A stretch of 63,376 nt of DNA, counting the filler, from Ministeria vibrans ATCC 50519 (lineage: Eukaryota; Protista; Filasterea), in assembly GCA_943704425.1 (NCBI GenBank). It is 5 parts of 5 records of this genome, joined end to end, with 100 filler letters (N's around TTAATTAATTAA, not from the genome) between each part and the next. Parts side by side here need not be neighbours in the genome. Positions count along the whole stretch, not along the records: positions 23,036 to 54,859 come from CALSCP010001971.1; 4 more parts are not named here. One strand, given 5' to 3'. The notes beneath the pieces were generated by a model. It had not been told where the DNA came from, made no database searches, and was given only the letters and a program-made list of their open reading frames with translations. The first letter of the stretch is position 1; every line of letters starts with the position of its first letter. Positions 1-54,859 of this stretch are shown one piece after another. The position numbers were made by a program, and so were the translations under genes.

Positions 1-1577
1 CAGTTCAACCACCGCCAAGTGACCGTTCCCACTGGCGTATCGGATGGCGTAATTGTCGTTGGCTGCCGGATCGACGCGACTGTCCGCTAGCAACAGCTGA
101 ACCACCGCCAAGCGACCGTTCAAACAGGCGTATTGGAAGGCCTTATTGTTGTTGGCTGCTGGATCCACACGATTATTAGCTAGCAACAGGATTGTTGTTG
201 GCTGCTGGATCCACACGATTATCCGCTAGCAACAGGTAAACCACCGCCGAGTGACCGTTCAGACTGGCGTATCGCACAGCTTCATTTTCGTTGGCGGCAG
301 GGTCAATTCGAGCATCTGCCAACAACAGTTCAACCACTGCCGAGTGACCTTTGGCACTGGCGTATCGGATGGCCTCATTGTCGTTGGCTGCCGGATTGAC
401 GCGACTGTCCGCTAGCAGCAGTTCAACCGCCGCTGGGTGACCGGTCTCACTGGCGCATTGTATAGCGTCATTGTGTCGTGGGCTGCCGGATCGACGCGAC
501 TGTCCGCCAGTAGCAGTTCAACCACCGCCAAGTGACCGTTCCTACTGGCGCATTGGATGGCGTAATTGCCGTCGGCGGCAGGGTTAATCCGAGCATCGGT
601 CAGCAACAATTCAACCACTGCNNNNNNNNNNNNNNNNNNNNNNNNNNNNNNNNNNNNNNNNNNNNNNNNNNNNNNNNNNNNNNNNNNNNNNNNNNNNNNN
701 NNNNNNNNNNNNNNNNNNNNNNNNNNNNNNNNNNNNNNNNNNNNNNNNNNNNNNGCAGCAGTTCAACCACCGCCAAGTGACCGTTCCTACTGGCGCATTG
801 GATGGCGTAATTGCCGTCGGCGGCAGGGTTAATCCGAGCATCGGTCAGCAACAATTCAACCACTGCCACCTGGCCAGCCTCACTCGCGCGTCCGATTCCG
901 TTTGTTTTCGTCGTCGACGGGTCCATTTCGCTAAGAAGACGCCTCACTGTCTCTTCCATGCTACACCCGCAAGCATACTCAAACAAGTCCCCAACCTTCA
1001 TCGCACTCACGTCCACTCTTGGGTGCTCCAGTATCAACTCCCCTATCGACCATTGACGACCGTCTAAAGCGCACTCCAACAAACTCTGACTGTCTCCAAT
1101 TTCCAAATCGCGCTGTGACAAAATCTCAATGACAATGTCGGCCCGTTCTGCACGGCATGCGTGCTTCAACACATCTGAAAAATTGGGTGCAGCTGGATGA
1201 ACACATTGCGCAAGGAGCGACATGAGGCGAAAGAGAGAACAGGCCATCGCGTCAGACAGCAAATGGCGAACAGTCTCAGAAGACATGCGACGCGCACCAT
1301 GCCATTTCGGGGGCGGACGCCGCGTGCTCAGACGCAGCAGAACCTCCAGTGCGCCCGCTGCATCTGTGTCGACGTAAGAGGTCTTCGCCTGTGGCAGTGT
1401 TGTGAAACCCGTCAAAGAAACAATTTCGCGCGACTCGTGGCTGACGCCTGACAAAGCCACAGCCGCTTGTGGGGTACACCAGCCAACAATGACGCATTTG
1501 CAATCGAATAAAAGTCGTTCAATTACAAGAGTGAAAACAATAGTTATGAAACTTGAAGAAAAATGAAGATCGAACAT
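1..1577 (-). pseudogene. Intronless ankyrin-repeat protein (possible degenerate N-terminal F-box), frameshifted repeat array; runs off window start
   Basis: Tandem ~34-aa repeats (DPAAxDNYAIxxASxNGHLAVVELLL) from about 870 down to 1; 2-nt insertion near 476 and a 46-nt duplication at 145-236 break the frame; N gap 622-754; start codon uncertain. Confidence 0.7.
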
Positions 1578-1616
1578 TCAATCATTTGGCCTTTCACACT
1601 TTTATTTGAAATCACA

Positions 1617-2883
1617 ATGGACGGCAAACCCCTGACTCTCTTTGAGCCGCTCACCGACCTGTTTCAGCCAGCGCTGGCTCTTCTGCCCGAAGGCTGGGTC
1701 GGCGACACCATTCTGGTGTTTGTTTGGATCTTTCTGTTCTGGCTGGCGAATCAGATTCTGATCTTGGTCGGTTGGCTCAAGGACGACCCGACGGGCCGCT
1801 ACTTCACGCTCCATGTCATCTGCAATCTTATTGTGACCATTGTGTATCTTGACGATGTCTTCTACTCGTACTGGTATCCCTCAACCGCCTACATTGGACC
1901 AACGGATCGAAGCGTACGACTGATCATCGCTTGTTCTTCGCTGTGACGCGCACCCGCCCCCATTCCTCTGCACATGCGGTGTGTATGTTGATCCCCTCTC
2001 TTCTTCGCCCTCTGCCGCGTCGCCCTTTGGCGTTCTTCCCGTCTTTTGCGATGGGTGTTGTTGTCATCTTTGCCCATCACGTGAATTTCGCCCTCACTGC
2101 GAATTCGACCTCGGATCGCTGATCCACGCACGCCATGGTGCATTTGATAGATTTTATGATGTACACACGGCAAAACCGGCGCACTTATACCCCGGACTAA
2201 CATTCTGTGTTTTTTTTTTTTTATGACTGTAGGGAGTTATAGTCATTGCTGCGCTGCACATTACGCACACGCTCTTTTGGTGGCCTCTCAACTCGGTGGA
2301 CCTGAATCATCATGTAGTCATGGTGTTTGTGATGCTCCCCGTCGCCGTCGCCCTCAACCCAGGCTACTTACTTGGCCACGGAGCGTTTTTCTCGTCGGGT
2401 TTGCCTGGCGGTATTGACTGTAAGATCAAACTTGTGTGTCTTTATTGTACTTTTTTTTTTTTATTGTTCTGAACTCTTCTCTCTTTTGTCTGTGTAGACT
2501 TGATGCTGGTCTGCGTGAAAAAGGGCTGGATGAAGAGCATCACGGAGAAGCGCTACAACTCGACGATTCAGCTTTGGATTCGCGCGCCCGGCTGTGTCTA
2601 CCACACGCTCCTCTCGTGGATCTGCTACGTCGAGGGTTCGCGCTCTCTCGAGCTCGGCACAAACCCCTGGGTGGTAAGTTGTGTATGGGAATTTCTCTTC
2701 CGCTTTGCTCACACTATGAATGTTTTCAAAAAGGGGTATCTTCCGGACTTTCTGACACTGCCCGGGACACTTCTGGTCATGGCCACATTCTACTGGAACG
2801 GACTCTACTTTGGCGGACGGGTTCTGCGCAACGTGGGAGCTAAGGAATACGAACTGGCCCAGAAGAAAGCAAAACAGTCATAA
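1617..2883 (+). CDS. TLC (TRAM/LAG1/CLN8)-like membrane protein, 4 exons
   Basis: Spliced product has several TM segments and the motifs YFTLHVICN, DLNHH, SGLPGGIDY-LML, IQLWIRAPGC, FYWNGLYF; GT-AG introns. Confidence 0.7.
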
Positions 2884-49178: not shown

Positions 49179-50146
49179 TTATACAAATCGGTTTGAGGGA
49201 GGTGGGGGAGCACACGCACCGAAGACGACAATCTGCGCAAGCTCATCGTGGTCGACCCCCTTCGCTGTAGTCAGCTGCACTAGTGTTGCGTCTAACTGCT
49301 GATCTATACACCCTCGCCCACTCCTCTGTCGCATCTCATCCTCCTCGTCGTCGTCTTCTTCATCATCACTCGCCTCCCGCGCGCCATTTACACGCGAAAA
49401 CCTATTCAATACTCTCTGAAATGGCTCTGGGCAATCTTCCAATGGCGTGCCACCACCCTCCTTCCTGTCCACTCCTTCGTCGTCGCCCTCGCCGTCATCG
49501 TTGTCGTACGGAAGCCGTCGGAGAGTCGAGTGCATGCGCTCCAGTTCGGGAGTGGAGGGTGCGACTGGCATCACCAAGGTCTTGAGCGTCATCTCACGAC
49601 ATGCCCTCGAGGTCACGCATTGCGCTGCCGTAATCCTTGCGTTGGAGGCAAAACTCGTGCTCGCAACAGTCGTTGATTCTTCGGCTGTGGCTGTAACGCG
49701 CACCGGACCCCAGCCAAAAAGTCGATAGACATAGTTGTACAGTCCCTGTCGCTGACTCGCATCCTCCATTTCCTGCTCGCTCTCCTCCTCCTTCTCCACC
49801 TTCACGTAGTCTCCGCCACCATCAACACTGCTTCGACTCGACTCGGCCAAAGACACTGCTGTCTCAAACACCGACGATGACATCACCACGCTCGAGGCAA
49901 CGCTACTGTTGCGGCTTCCCGCCACATCGCTGCCAATCGTCTCAATGAGTGCGTCTTCGTTGTCGCTGTCATTGTCGCTGTCGTTGTCGTTGTCATCTTG
50001 ATCGGTGGGAGCGGCCACTTCCTCGTCCGCCGGCACAAACACTTCGCCAGGTGGAAGATTGATGAACGGATGTGCGTACAGGTCTTCGTGGTCAATGCGA
50101 TCGTTCGGATACAATCTACACAGCATTGTAAGAATCATACAATTGC

Positions 50147-50180
<34 letters not shown>

Positions 50181-51453
50181 ACAATAAAAATACCTCAAGA
50201 GCTCTCGAATGAGCATTCTCATGCTGCGCGAGACATTGAGCGGGAACCAGACGGCGTTGCGACGCAGGGCGTATCGCACGTCTTTGCAGGTGTCATAAAT
50301 CTTCTTAAGCAACACCTCGCGCGTGCGCCAAGCCCCCGTCACGTCGAAGGGCATCTCGCCAAAGAGTGCCTCAAAGGCGACCACCCCCAGCGACCACAAG
50401 TCTGCACGCCAAGTGTACTTCTGTCCTTCCAGGATCTCCGGAGCCATCCACAGTGGTGAGCCGACAACCGATGATGTCTCCTCAAGGGTGTTCGAAAAGC
50501 GCTTTGCTAGGCCCAGATCACCAAGTTTCGCAACAATCCGATCGCCGACACGCGACAAGAAGACATTGTCCGGCTTGATGTCACGGTGGAGCACGCGAAT
50601 CGAGCGCAGATAGCGAATGCCGCTCGTCATGTCGCGCAGCAGCGGACGAAACTGTCGCTCCTCAATGCACTCGTGCGGCTGTCGTCGTCGATACGCCTTG
50701 AGCGTCCCCAGATTGCAGTACTCCATCACAATCCAGACGCACTGGCCAAAGGTGGGCTCGTCCAGACACGGAAGTGTCCCAATCTGTTCGACGACGTTTT
50801 CGTGCCGACACAGCCGCAGCAACTCCATCTCTTCGGCAAGCTGGTTGAGCCAGTGGTGTACATGCTCCCGCTGCGTGGCCTCAATCGCCTTCTGCTCCGC
50901 TTTGCTCTGTCGCGCGTTCACTTTCGGCAGACCCAATTTTTCGACAATGTCCCCAAAGGCCGTCCGCTGCATCTTAATGGCGACCTTGCGCCCCTACACA
51001 CCACATAAAAAAGGTAACATCATACGAATGTGCAAAAATATGAGTCAAATGAAGCCCCATAGCGGAAAATGAGTGTCGGGAAAGTTTTTTTTTTTTTTTT
51101 TTCCCACTTGGATCTGCCACTCTTATAGCACGCGTCGTGACTCACTTCTCTTCTGCTTATGTTTGCAGGAAAAGATGTTTCCCACTTGGCGAAGTCAACT
51201 TCGTTTTGTGGAAGAATCTCCGAAAGGGTAGAGCCACTGCAATGCAACACCAAGGAGGATGGTGTTCAGGGCAGCGGGCTGACGCGGGCGGGCGGGGCGG
51301 CACAGAGCCAAAGGGTCGATGAAACCACTCTCACTGAACTCTCACTCTCACCTCGTCCGTCGTCCCGCGATACACCACTCCAAAAGAGCCTTCGCCGAGC
51401 CGGAAAGGCGCCTTGCCACCGTGCATCCTGTCAACTTCCACATGTAGCGTCAT
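49179..51453 (-). CDS. Ser/Thr protein kinase (ATG1/ULK-like)
   Basis: Exon 1 LGEGSFGVVYRG; VAIK; HRDIKPDN; DLG instead of DFG; GSPLWMAPE; ADLWSLG; HPF; acidic C-terminal tail. Confidence 0.88.
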
Positions 51454-51642
51454 ACTGAGCTTTTCTTTCTGAATAAAATTGAAAAAGTTTGAATTCTCAA
51501 TAATAATTACGACGAGTAGTTATTATAATTAATTCTCTTGCGATCGTGTCTTTGCTTCTCCCTTCCTTCGCGCCCCTCTCCTCCCGCTCTACTTCTGACC
51601 GTGCCCCCTCCCCGCTTCTGACGGCTCCTCTCGCAGACCCCC

Positions 51643-53973
51643 ATGGCCGACTCGGACCCCCTGCAGGCGGACATCCGCTCTCTCGCAACGCAAATCTGCT
51701 CCAAGTGTCAGGATGTCGAGCGCCACAAAGCCCAGTCGCGCAAGCTCGGCGGAAAGGTCATGGAGGTCGCCTTGCCCGTCGATAGCATTGCTCCCGAGCG
51801 TCTTGAGCAGCCTGAAATTCGCGCAGTAAGAAAAATGCGCGACGTCATAGTTTGACCATTAAAAAAAAAAAAAAAACTTTTGCCTCTGTGTCAACAATTG
51901 TAGATTCTCGGAGACTTGCACAAGTATCTTGAAGATTGCCGGTCCCTGATTGGAAGCATGGTCAAGAGAAACCTCAGCCAGCGCCTCATGCGCGGTCCGT
52001 CCGACCTGCAAATGTTCGAGACGCTCTACGAACACCTTGAGTCGTGCAACGACCGTCTCGACGTCGCCCTCAGCACCGGCTTTGGCGCTGTCGACGGCGA
52101 CGATCATTATGAAGACTTGCGTGCCGACATGAACAAAGGCGCCATGACGATGTGGCTGGACGAGCAGGTGCGCAACCAACCAAGCAAGCATGTTGTGTCT
52201 CGCTTGTGTCTGTCACTCTCTGCTGTTCTTTCTCTCGCTTGTTTCTTCTCACTTGTTTCTTTCGCTTGTTTCTTCTCACTTGTTTCGTCTCACTTGTTTC
52301 TCTCGCCTGTTTCTTCTCACTTGTTTCGTCTCACTTGTTTCTTCTCACTTTTTCACTTGTATCTTTCCCTTTTACTTGTTTCTTTCGCTCGCACCTACAC
52401 TGTCTCTCTCTCTTTCTTTCTCTTATTTGACACGTCTCTCACGTGCTTCGTTCTTCTTTTTCTCTCTCTTTTTAACTTTATCTCTTCCTCTCGTCAGAAT
52501 GGCTGGAGCGCCGTCTACGTGACAACACCATCAAAAGAAACCACCTGGCGTCGTGCCTGTCTTCCCGTTTTGCCTCCTGTCGCACACGACTTTCAACCAG
52601 AGGTGCGCACACACTTTTAATCAAATAATAACAAAACAAAAGTTATTTTATTATTGCTATTAATTTTATTAATCAATTTTTGCTCTTTTCTCTTTCAAGA
52701 TGCCATTGTCGCGCGAGGAGAGTTCTGATTTCTTGAAAAAGGTTGCCGAAAAGCACCGCTTGAGCTTTGTGTCGGAACAGTCGTTTAGCGTCATTGGCGG
52801 CCTCCTGTCGGATCTGCCCACGGCGCTGCATGTCGTCGCGCAAGTCATGAACCTACGCAAAGACAAGGGTAAAATCGAAGTGCTCCTGCAAGACCTGGCC
52901 GAGCGTCAACAGCAGCCCGAGTTTAAGGCAACCGAAGTGCCTGGAGAGTCCTCTATTTGCACCGCCCAGCTAAACAGTATTCAGGTGAGCTTCATTCACT
53001 GCGACAGTTGTCGTCGTAAATGAATCAGCAATATTTTAAACTCATTTTTTTGTTTTGCCTTTTTTTATTGTGTGTGCAGAGCATCTGGAGTTTGCTGTTA
53101 CAAGACTTGCGGGCACGCAAAGAGGTAGAAGCAGTGCGATGTTTGCATTTACTGGCGTTTTTTGCGGCCGAGGAGCTGCCTTTGTCGTGGCTGGAGGTGT
53201 GGAAGAAGAAGGAGGATGTGCGCACGCTGATTGTGCGCCTTCACCGTCTCGAACTCGTGGCCTTTGACGAAACCGAGGGTGTCGTTGTGATGGACCCAGC
53301 GCTGCAGGCTGTCATGCGTCGATCGCTGGCGGACAGTGAGCGCCGGGCCTGGGTGTCCGCCGCCCTCATTGTCGTGCGTCGCATGTGGCCCTTCCGCAGC
53401 GAATCATCCGCCACCTGGCGTCTTGCCTGTGCCACCGCCATCCACGCCGACGCTGTCGCGCAACACGTCCAGGTTAGTGGTTTGGCGACGCCTGACGCAC
53501 GCGCGCATCTCGAAAGTATGGCGCACTTCTCGGTGGCCACGCAGTCCTTTGAGCGTGCCATCTCGCTCTGGTCGACCCTCGCCGCCTTGGAACTCGCTGC
53601 CACCAATGCGTCCCACCCAAACTACGCTGCAACCCTCAACAATTTGGCTCATGTCCAACGCGAGCTTGGCGATCACGCAAGTGCCCAAGACAACTACCAG
53701 AAATCACTTTCCATCCTCGAGCGGTCGCGCGGGCGAGCCCACCCCGACATTGCTGCCGTGCTCATGGGTCTCGGCGCCAGTCTCTATCGCCAGCGCAAGT
53801 TTACTCGTGCTCGTCCTCTCTTTGAACGCGCTCTTAAAATCGAACGCGAGTCATTGCCCCAGGCACATCCGCGAATTGTCAACACACTCACCTGGCTGAA
53901 AAATTGGCCCGAGTCCATCATCAGCCCGACCAGCTCGCAACATGGCTCGCCTAAACGCGACAAGCGAAAGTAA
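51643..53973 (+). CDS. NLR-like protein: MLKL-type four-helix bundle plus brace, truncated NB-ARC (HD1-WHD), TPR repeats; 5 exons
   Basis: N-terminus follows the MLKL 4HB pattern; PLSREESSDFL, DLPTAL, SIWSL, LLAFFAAEELP, MDPALQAVMR; TPRs AATLNNLA, HPDIAAVLMGLG, PLFERALKI. Confidence 0.75.
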
Positions 53974-54139
53974 TCACCTTTCTTTCTCTCTCGCACTTCC
54001 TTTTGTAATCTGTAGTACACAACTCATAATCATAATCATAATAATATTAATATTAATATCAATATTAATAATAATTATTTTAATTTTATCATTGTTATTA
54101 TTATTATTATTATTACAGTATTATTACGTGTTTATTTTT

Positions 54140-54682: not shown

Positions 54683-54751
54683 CTGTCAAAAACAAAAAGA
54701 ATAAATTTAATAATATAAAATTAATTATTATTATTATTATTAAATAATTTA

Positions 54752-54859
<108 letters not shown>

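Follow-up and report, generated by a model that had tools for sequence, protein, structure and literature searches.

Receptors of the NOD-like receptor (NLR) and signal transduction ATPases with numerous domains (STAND) type are defined by a nucleotide switch, while four-helix-bundle executioners (MLKL, HeLo, RPW8/CC) are normally triggered by an oligomer of the nucleotide-binding oligomerisation domain (NOD) or by a kinase. In MLKL, a non-catalytic C-terminal kinase or pseudokinase restrains the bundle until a signal arrives. Fungal NLRs combine HeLo-like or MLKL-like N-terminal domains with bodies made of NB-ARC and tetratricopeptide repeats (TPRs) (bioRxiv 10.1101/2022.03.16.484565, also PMC9815663; PMC12881547). 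Here we describe a gene of the filasterean protist Ministeria vibrans ATCC 50519 (assembly GCA_943704425.1, our G000; 29.7 Mb, 2860 contigs), found in a window of 63,376 nucleotides that joins five parts of this genome. The gene lies at 51643-53973 on the plus strand, within the part at 23036-54859 (CALSCP010001971.1, contig C1971), and encodes a candidate receptor that very probably consists of an MLKL_N-type bundle and brace, a linker of about 40 residues, a STAND lid, a winged helix, a helical arm and three TPRs, with no core of a nucleotide-binding domain (NBD). As far as our searches and knowledge reach, no expressed protein has been described that combines a killer domain with a lid, a winged helix and repeats in the absence of an NBD core. 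Bundle-NB-ARC-TPR receptors are already known from fungi and truncated NLRs from plants; what is new is the NBD-less combination, in one gene of one organism.

Reading and translation of the DNA gave a five-exon gene of 576 codons and a stop, whose translated exons reproduce exactly the strings quoted in a previous sequence-only reading of the locus: IRSLATQICSKCQDVERHKAQSRKLGGKVMEVALPVDSI, LHKYLEDCRSL...DRLDVAL, MTMWLDE, VYVTTP, PLSREES..FL, DLPTAL, VMDP and the TPRs. The transcript has its first ATG at 51643. Transcript contigs of three separate studies, filed under three organism labels (X1, X5 and X6), are 100% identical to the window, untranslated regions (UTRs) included (51400-54100). 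All four GT..AG joints are present as modelled in X1 and X5 (skips of 78, 330, 97 and 95 nt), and those of introns 1, 3 and 4 only in X6, which has no contig across intron 2; the DNA run X19 contains none of the four. The presence of the predicted joints in the transcript contigs and their absence from the DNA run indicate that transcription and splicing follow the gene model. A single 1928-nt transcript contig covers 51540-54016, the X1 contig is unbroken from the 5' UTR through the 3' UTR, and 52167 is joined straight to 52498 in both X1 and X5. The sequence-only reading had named a missed NBD exon as something to look for in transcripts, and no extra exon occurs in the contigs of X1, X5 or X6. 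The product of the gene is one spliced mRNA that codes for 576 aa. The labels of X1, X5 and X6 stand for organisms A, B and C (2025, 2011 and 2024, respectively); identical contigs under three labels point to the same organism or strain, or to a contaminant or co-culture partner. Parts of the gene stretch were also seen in seawater and marine metatranscriptome runs.

All protein searches, profile scans and folds of the candidate receptor were made exon by exon. Scanned in this way against the Pfam library, exon 1 matched a sole family, MLKL_N (PF22215; positions 4-43 of 142, 15.3 bits against a curated cut-off of 27 bits, E 0.015). The genome holds two Pfam-certified MLKL_N genes, L001 (C1493:120039-123356; 41.8 bits) and L002 (C1832:1-2558; 38.1 bits), and a third, weaker one, L031 (C2759:43849-47115). 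In these three genes the bundle precedes a protein kinase domain, and the kinases of L001 and L002 keep the HRDLKPSN motif, which amounts to an MLKL architecture in a protist. Exon 2 aligned with the MLKL_N domain of L001 at 32% identity (BLASTP, residues 56-111, E 4e-6). Against a profile built from the three own-genome domains, exon 1 fell on positions 7-40 (p 0.005) and exon 2 on positions 57-106 (p 6e-8), so that the two exon halves are colinear in their homology to certified MLKL_N members. The alignment further revealed a MADS start common to exon 1 and L002, an RL(V/M)RG...F...L motif shared by exon 2 and the paralogs, and a correspondence behind the bundle between the tail of exon 2 (DHYEDLRA...) and AQEEDLRA of L002 or AHEEDMRN of L001, with the EDLRA motif in common. 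On these alignments, exons 1 and 2 are the two predicted halves of an MLKL_N-type four-helix bundle with the start of its brace, and the MLKL-like N-terminus recognised at first sight is borne out. Searches of PDB sequences with exons 1 and 2 returned chance-level matches only, the MLKL_N region of L001 found no homolog in a word-based search, and the ESM Atlas assignment of exon 2 to a HeLo cluster (0.80) is a lead too weak to count. The kinase or pseudokinase of MLKL has no counterpart in the gene, as the Pfam scan found Pkinase in none of its exons.

The alpha/beta nucleotide-binding core of such receptors needs roughly 150 residues. The stretch from the bundle to the lid counts about 65, part of which belong to the brace-like segment. 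The strict Walker A pattern GxxxxGK[ST] is absent from all six frames of 51400-54100 and from the mRNA, the looser patterns [AG]xxxxGK[STN] and GK[ST] are absent from the plus-strand frames of the same interval, and Pfam NB-ARC matched no exon. The tail of exon 2, where MTMWLDE had been taken for a Walker B motif, matched no NBD profile (profile comparison, shuffle p 0.3-0.4) and aligns with the MLKL brace, so this assignment was rejected. Exon 3 (VYVTTPSKETTW...) resembles by eye the hhhTSRxxxW segment of the family and reached p ~0.02 in a shuffle test against the sub-profile from Walker B to ARC1, while hhalign and hmmsearch found nothing in it against the NB-ARC family; its VYVTTP, proposed as sensor 1, is thus not established as such and is a marginal vestige at best. 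We found neither a Walker A nor a Walker B and sensor 1 motif in the candidate receptor. The claim of a lost P-loop was correct in itself and too modest in extent, since without support for Walker B and sensor 1 the loss exceeds the P-loop: the mRNA lacks the whole alpha/beta NBD core from Walker A to Walker B, save at most for a vestige of the last strands.

The identity of the C-terminal part was approached with a HMMER search (phmmer) of 1.84 billion representative proteins, for which residues 1-175 of exon 5, the non-TPR part, served as a query. It found 30 relatives library-wide (P0001-P0030; E 7e-6 to 1e-3), matched at about residues 300-600 of proteins of 200-1160 aa, and most of them carry DUF7779 (28/30) and TPR_12 (26/30), with NB-ARC in 16/30 and TIR_2 in 9/30. 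Their consensus comprises a full GLGGVGKTQ P-loop, WLLxFDNA, TSR, LGDLPLALEQAAAY and VHRLVQAV, and hhalign matched exon 5 with this family over 269 columns (E 1.4e-29). The AlphaFold model of residues 1-175, made with the family alignment as input, reached a pLDDT (predicted local distance difference test) of 90.2 and shows a winged helix (helix-helix-helix-hairpin) with long helices behind it. In the exhaustive VIA-align comparison, all top ranks were STAND proteins, matched in the winged helix and HD2: Apaf-1 366-565 (Z 11.9), CED-4 (11.2), the STAND-TPR protein 6mfv (10.4), MalT (8.8), NRG1A (8.8), Avs3 (8.5), Dark and NRC1; ADR1 matched at Z 7.5, and generic winged-helix regulators reached Z ~7. 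Foldseek against PDB gave only matches with E > 0.01 (generic winged helices and Apaf-1), too weak to count. PF25000 (DUF7779) itself did not match exon 5 at E up to 10 in Pfam, nor in the genome scan; homology to DUF7779 is therefore transitive only, through the 28 of 30 nearest relatives that carry this domain at the aligned place. A winged helix of the ARC2 type is nonetheless recognisable in exon 5 on the model and the family alignment. As announced in the sequence-only reading, it has MDP at the MHD position, and Asp72 (53293-53295) occupies a column in which at least 90% of the relatives have His, which means that the MHD-type His is missing. In the arm, W113 is invariant in the family and kept, H122 is nearly invariant, and other core positions are kept as well. 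Pfam detected TPR_12 (E 2.8e-24, 85.6 bits, cut-off 30.1) and TPR_10 (E 3e-14, 52.9 bits, cut-off 27.5) in exon 5. Three 42-residue units of the kinesin light chain (KLC) type, as expected from the first inspection, could be read off the profile alignment, and they share 30-41% identity with TPRs elsewhere in the genome.

Exon 4 was placed by hhalign on columns 305-350 of the NB-ARC-DUF7779-TPR alignment A1 (P 0.0021), directly upstream of and colinear with exon 5. The matched columns hold the ReES..FL...LGDLPLAL helices (hmmsearch p 0.0016), so the equation of DLPTAL with GLPLAL holds. An independent profile of 12 own-genome NLRs put exon 4 at the same place (p 6e-4), and MAFFT agreed. The AlphaFold model of exon 4 has four helices with a pLDDT of ~80 over residues 1-70. 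Its top VIA-align matches were nearly all AAA+/STAND lids (a clamp loader and NRC2 312-390 at Z 7.6, Apaf-1 284-359 at Z 6.7); these Z values are moderate and insufficient alone, but the match list is uniform and agrees with the sequence placement. A lid (HD1/ARC1) with a GLPLAL-type helix is thus recognised in exon 4. For exon 4 the ESM Atlas pointed to a DUF7779 cluster, a lead too weak to count, and PDB sequence searches with this exon, as with the first half of exon 5, returned nothing above chance level. Taken from sequence comparison and modelling together, exons 4 and 5 represent the predicted back half of an NB-ARC/STAND-TPR receptor (lid, winged helix, arm and three TPRs), in agreement with the NLR-derived scaffold proposed previously. 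The features of the gene are collected in Table 1.

Table 1. Parts of the candidate receptor gene, in positions of the window
Feature	Position	Strand	Evidence
5' UTR; no upstream ATG	51540-51642	+	X1 and X6 transcript contigs start at 51540; sequence read
Exon 1, 61 aa; predicted MLKL_N-type bundle helices 1-2; starts MADS	51643-51825	+	Pfam, own-genome profile, alignment
Intron 1, 78 nt, GT..AG	51826-51903	+	joint 51825/51904 in X1, X5, X6; none in DNA run X19
Exon 2, 88 aa	51904-52167	+	translation, transcript joints
Exon 2, first 56 aa; predicted MLKL_N-type helices 3-4, RLMRGPSDLQMFETLYEHL motif	51904-52071	+	BLASTP to L001, own-genome profile
Exon 2 tail DDHYEDLRADMNKGAMTMWLDEQ; brace-like MLKL_N extension	52099-52167	+	alignment with L002, L001
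Intron 2, 330 nt, GT..AG; CT-rich tandem repeat	52168-52497	+	joint in X1 and X5
Exon 3, 35 aa; linker, possible vestige of last NBD strands VYVTTPSKETTW	52498-52602	+	shuffle test p ~0.02; hhalign/hmmsearch negative
Intron 3, 97 nt, GT..AG	52603-52699	+	joint in X1, X5, X6
Exon 4, 95 aa	52700-52984	+	translation, transcript joints
Exon 4 residues 2-70; predicted AAA+/STAND lid (HD1/ARC1), four helices	52703-52909	+	hhalign, profile, AlphaFold, VIA, MAFFT
DLPTAL at GLPLAL position, exon 4	52811-52828	+	profile placement
Intron 4, 95 nt, GT..AG	52985-53079	+	joint in X1, X5, X6
Exon 5, 297 aa and stop	53080-53973	+	translation, transcript joints
Exon 5 residues 1-82; predicted STAND winged helix (ARC2/DUF7779-like)	53080-53325	+	phmmer, hhalign, AlphaFold, VIA
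VMDP (M71-D72-P73) at MHD position, exon 5	53290-53298	+	family alignment; His -> Asp
Exon 5 residues 85-140; helical arm, HD2-like, conserved ...ERRAW...TW...H...	53332-53499	+	family alignment, Apaf-1 match
Three 42-residue KLC-type TPR units and capping helix	53500-53901	+	Pfam TPR_12/TPR_10, family alignment, own-genome TPR matches
Stop codon (53971-53973) and short 3' UTR	53971-54016	+	translation; transcript contigs end at 54014-54016, ahead of AT-rich repeat

The same genome contains at least 29 NB-ARC genes above the Pfam cut-off (35 places listed), and a P-loop was present in 12/12 of the NB-ARC open reading frames (ORFs) examined. Their architectures (L003-L014) include caspase (Peptidase_C14)-NB-ARC, DUF4559-NB-ARC, NB-ARC followed by an Apaf-1-type winged helix and a beta-propeller, and NB-ARC-TPR, the last with a P-loop of the AAGGVGKS type; this is a large and varied repertoire for a genome of 29.7 Mb. 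The intact NB-ARC genes and the three MLKL_N-kinase genes together indicate that a toolkit for cell death and immunity is present. An MLKL_N-like N-terminus was found on none of the 12 sampled own NLRs, and none of these 12 genes has detectable similarity to exons 4 and 5 outside the TPRs, which makes the candidate receptor a singleton combination in its genome. Own-genome searches with exons 1, 2 and 4 detected no paralog, and exon 5 matched only TPRs elsewhere. The nearest relatives of the winged helix and arm (P0001-P0030; L037) are metagenomic or bacterial TIR/PNP-STAND-DUF7779-TPR proteins rather than the own NB-ARC-TPR genes, and one of them, P0007, lies in a bacterial neighbourhood between IclR, isocitrate dehydrogenase and aconitase genes. 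Nearest relatives of bacterial type may reflect a horizontal origin or mere divergence. A lone fragment of a DUF7779-type winged helix (MHRLVQDV..., 27.9 bits, 152 aa) was noticed at L034 (C313:82323-85535; ORF 1447-1905, plus strand). There is no NB-ARC in its vicinity; the NB-ARC gene L012 on C2085 repeats short stretches of it nearly verbatim (BLASTP), and the fragment looks like a partial duplicate or a piece of a pseudogene.

How could such a protein work? The MHD-type His touches the bound ADP in STAND proteins such as Apaf-1 and plant NLRs. Because the candidate has no P-loop, Walker B or MHD-type His, it should be able to act neither as a nucleotide switch nor as a builder of a NOD ring. 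The missing nucleotide-binding engine implies that the protein is controlled in another way or that its role is limited to modulating full-length relatives. We propose that the lid-winged helix-TPR module takes the place of the (pseudo)kinase as the restraint of the bundle. Once the short TPR sensor binds a ligand or a partner protein, the bundle would be set free and might assemble into oligomers by way of the brace-like segment and then damage membranes, leading to regulated cell death or an immune response. Such a gene could have arisen when a bundle-NB-ARC-TPR receptor lost an internal stretch, or when MLKL_N exons became fused to the 3' part of an NB-ARC-TPR gene, two routes that cannot be told apart. 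We cautiously lean towards the architecture described above in combination with the action of an MLKL-like restrained executioner, the action on its own being considerably less certain. Its most specific form is doubtful: a ligand-gated MLKL, that is, a nucleotide-independent, single-chain sensor-executioner whose TPRs sense a viral or other ligand and free the killer with neither a NOD oligomer nor an upstream kinase.

Several observations weigh against a restrained executioner. At the N-terminus, exon 2 alone has no Pfam MLKL_N match and exon 1 stays under the gathering score. The lid and winged helix are beyond the reach of the Pfam NB-ARC and DUF7779 models, which would also fit relaxed constraint. 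Three TPRs are a very short sensor. The sequence-only reading had proposed expression and orthologs as a check; transcript contigs from three studies speak for the gene, while the genome yielded no close paralog, and neither the protein itself nor an ortholog was found in the representative protein library, nor any match in the JGI metagenomes (searched with the first half of exon 5), which for orthologs is weak evidence of absence.

Part of this evidence would suit an expressed relic, a decaying receptor remnant with a deleted NBD that retains an open frame and transcription but no selected function. The gene is a singleton with no detectable ortholog or paralog, its lid and winged helix have diverged past the Pfam models, it has neither the MHD-type His nor more than a short array of TPRs, and the loose winged-helix fragment at L034 shows that pieces of NLRs are scattered in this genome. 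Nevertheless, the 576-codon frame is open over five exons and its introns are precisely spliced in three independent data sets (all four in X1 and X5; introns 1, 3 and 4 in X6). The diverged winged helix still models at a pLDDT of 90, with the invariant Trp and other core positions kept. Moreover, the absence of any close full-length parent means that the NBD was not lost recently, and the frame has nonetheless survived. We consider a relic unlikely on this balance.

The lid and winged helix provide interfaces in STAND oligomers, and both are retained here, as would suit a modulator. According to this explanation, the NBD-less protein would bind full-length NB-ARC-TPR receptors, their ligands or the MLKL_N-kinases through its lid, winged helix, TPRs or brace, and serve as a decoy, inhibitor or adaptor in the manner of NRG1C towards NRG1A/B. 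Truncated NLRs that antagonise full-length relatives are documented and give it a precedent (bioRxiv 10.1101/2021.01.27.428547; PMC12177489), and the many intact NB-ARC-TPR genes and the three MLKL_N-kinase genes offer possible partners. The candidate, however, keeps an apparently intact killer-type N-terminal domain that is absent in NRG1C, and its winged helix and lid have no detectable similarity to those of the own NB-ARC-TPR genes, which argues against specific hetero-oligomerisation with them; a modulator appears unlikely. Hardly credible is an artefact in which mis-assembly or a missed exon hides the NBD of an ordinary bundle-NB-ARC-TPR receptor: the DNA contigs of X19 do break within the tandem repeat of intron 2, showing that its genomic sequence is hard to assemble, but the mRNA contigs that cross this joint in X1 and X5, in X1 from UTR to UTR, reveal no hidden exon and exclude it in practice.

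The intron in question had been described as low-complexity, and indeed CT-rich 14-nt units are repeated in tandem within it at 52229-52354. Its 110 codons are stop-free and in frame with exons 2 and 3, which results in a read-through ORF at 51916-52620, and its retention would add a low-complexity stretch rich in Leu, Phe, Ser and Cys. The read depth over intron 2 in X1 was 3-8, compared with 291 over the exons. About 30 loci elsewhere in the genome share ~70% identity with it; as these matches are CT-rich repeats at just this level, the possibility of a specific mobile element was rejected.

AT-rich microsatellites surround the gene: one region, at 54017-54126, consists of (ATATTA)n/(TAT)n right behind the 3' UTR, where the contigs of all runs stop (54016), and a long (ATT)n run closes the piece (54724-54859). 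Upstream, a divergent protein kinase gene occupies 49179-51468 on the minus strand. Its first coding exon lies at ~51331-51453, where a small ORF (51331-51453, minus strand) codes for the glycine-rich loop LGEGSFGVVYRG, and a 597-aa ORF (49179-50972, minus strand) supplies the remaining kinase domain (Pkinase E 3.6e-42, from profile position 29). The kinase contigs of X5 and X6 end at 51468 and 51460 and the receptor mRNA starts at 51540. The two 5' ends are thus ~70 bp apart across an AT-rich stretch, and the genes likely share a bidirectional promoter. The idea that this neighbour is the split-off kinase of an MLKL was rejected, its 30% identity to the kinase of L001 being at the generic level of kinases.

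The candidate receptor is a naturally expressed protein that keeps a killer domain and a sensor end without the switch between them. If functional, it would show whether a bundle can be gated by nothing more than a lid-winged helix-repeat module. It would then also be an intermediate form, made by nature, between cell-death machines of the MLKL type and those of the NLR type, and would extend to protists the short list of truncated NLRs that have their own role. Even as a relic, the locus, along with three MLKL_N-kinase genes and ~30 NB-ARC genes, still documents a rich cell-death toolkit in the small genome (~30 Mb) of a marine protist.

Among the known systems, Apaf-1 and CED-4 are the best structural matches to the winged helix and the next helical domain, and Apaf-1 also to the lid; they differ in their CARD effectors, complete NBD, and WD40 sensor or lack of any. 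Closest to exons 4 and 5 in sequence are the bacterial and metagenomic TIR- or PNP-NB-ARC-DUF7779-TPR proteins (25-31% identity, same conserved positions), which in turn have other N-terminal effectors (TIR_2, EAD7 or nucleoside phosphorylase) and a complete P-loop NBD. NRG1 and ADR1 of plants carry an RPW8-type bundle related to MLKL and HeLo. The winged helix of the candidate is structurally similar to those of NRG1A and ADR1, and NRG1C shows by precedent that an NLR can function with no working NBD; NRG1C, however, has no killer domain and keeps its leucine-rich repeat end, whereas the candidate keeps both the killer domain and the TPR end and lacks only the NBD core. With MLKL of animals and plants, and with L001, L002 and L031 of its own genome, it shares the MLKL_N bundle and the brace-like EDLRA, and it would resemble them in a regulation independent of nucleotide hydrolysis by a NOD. 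It departs from them in that the kinase or pseudokinase is replaced by the NLR-derived lid-winged helix-TPR part, and in its ~32% identity to the paralogs over helices 3-4. Compared with the HeLo-like and MLKL-like NLRs of fungi, which have a complete NB-ARC with a P-loop, the candidate lacks the alpha/beta core, has Asp in place of the MHD-type His and belongs to a marine protist, while the order of the parts is the same in both: a bundle, then a STAND lid and a winged helix of DUF7779 type, then KLC-type TPRs.

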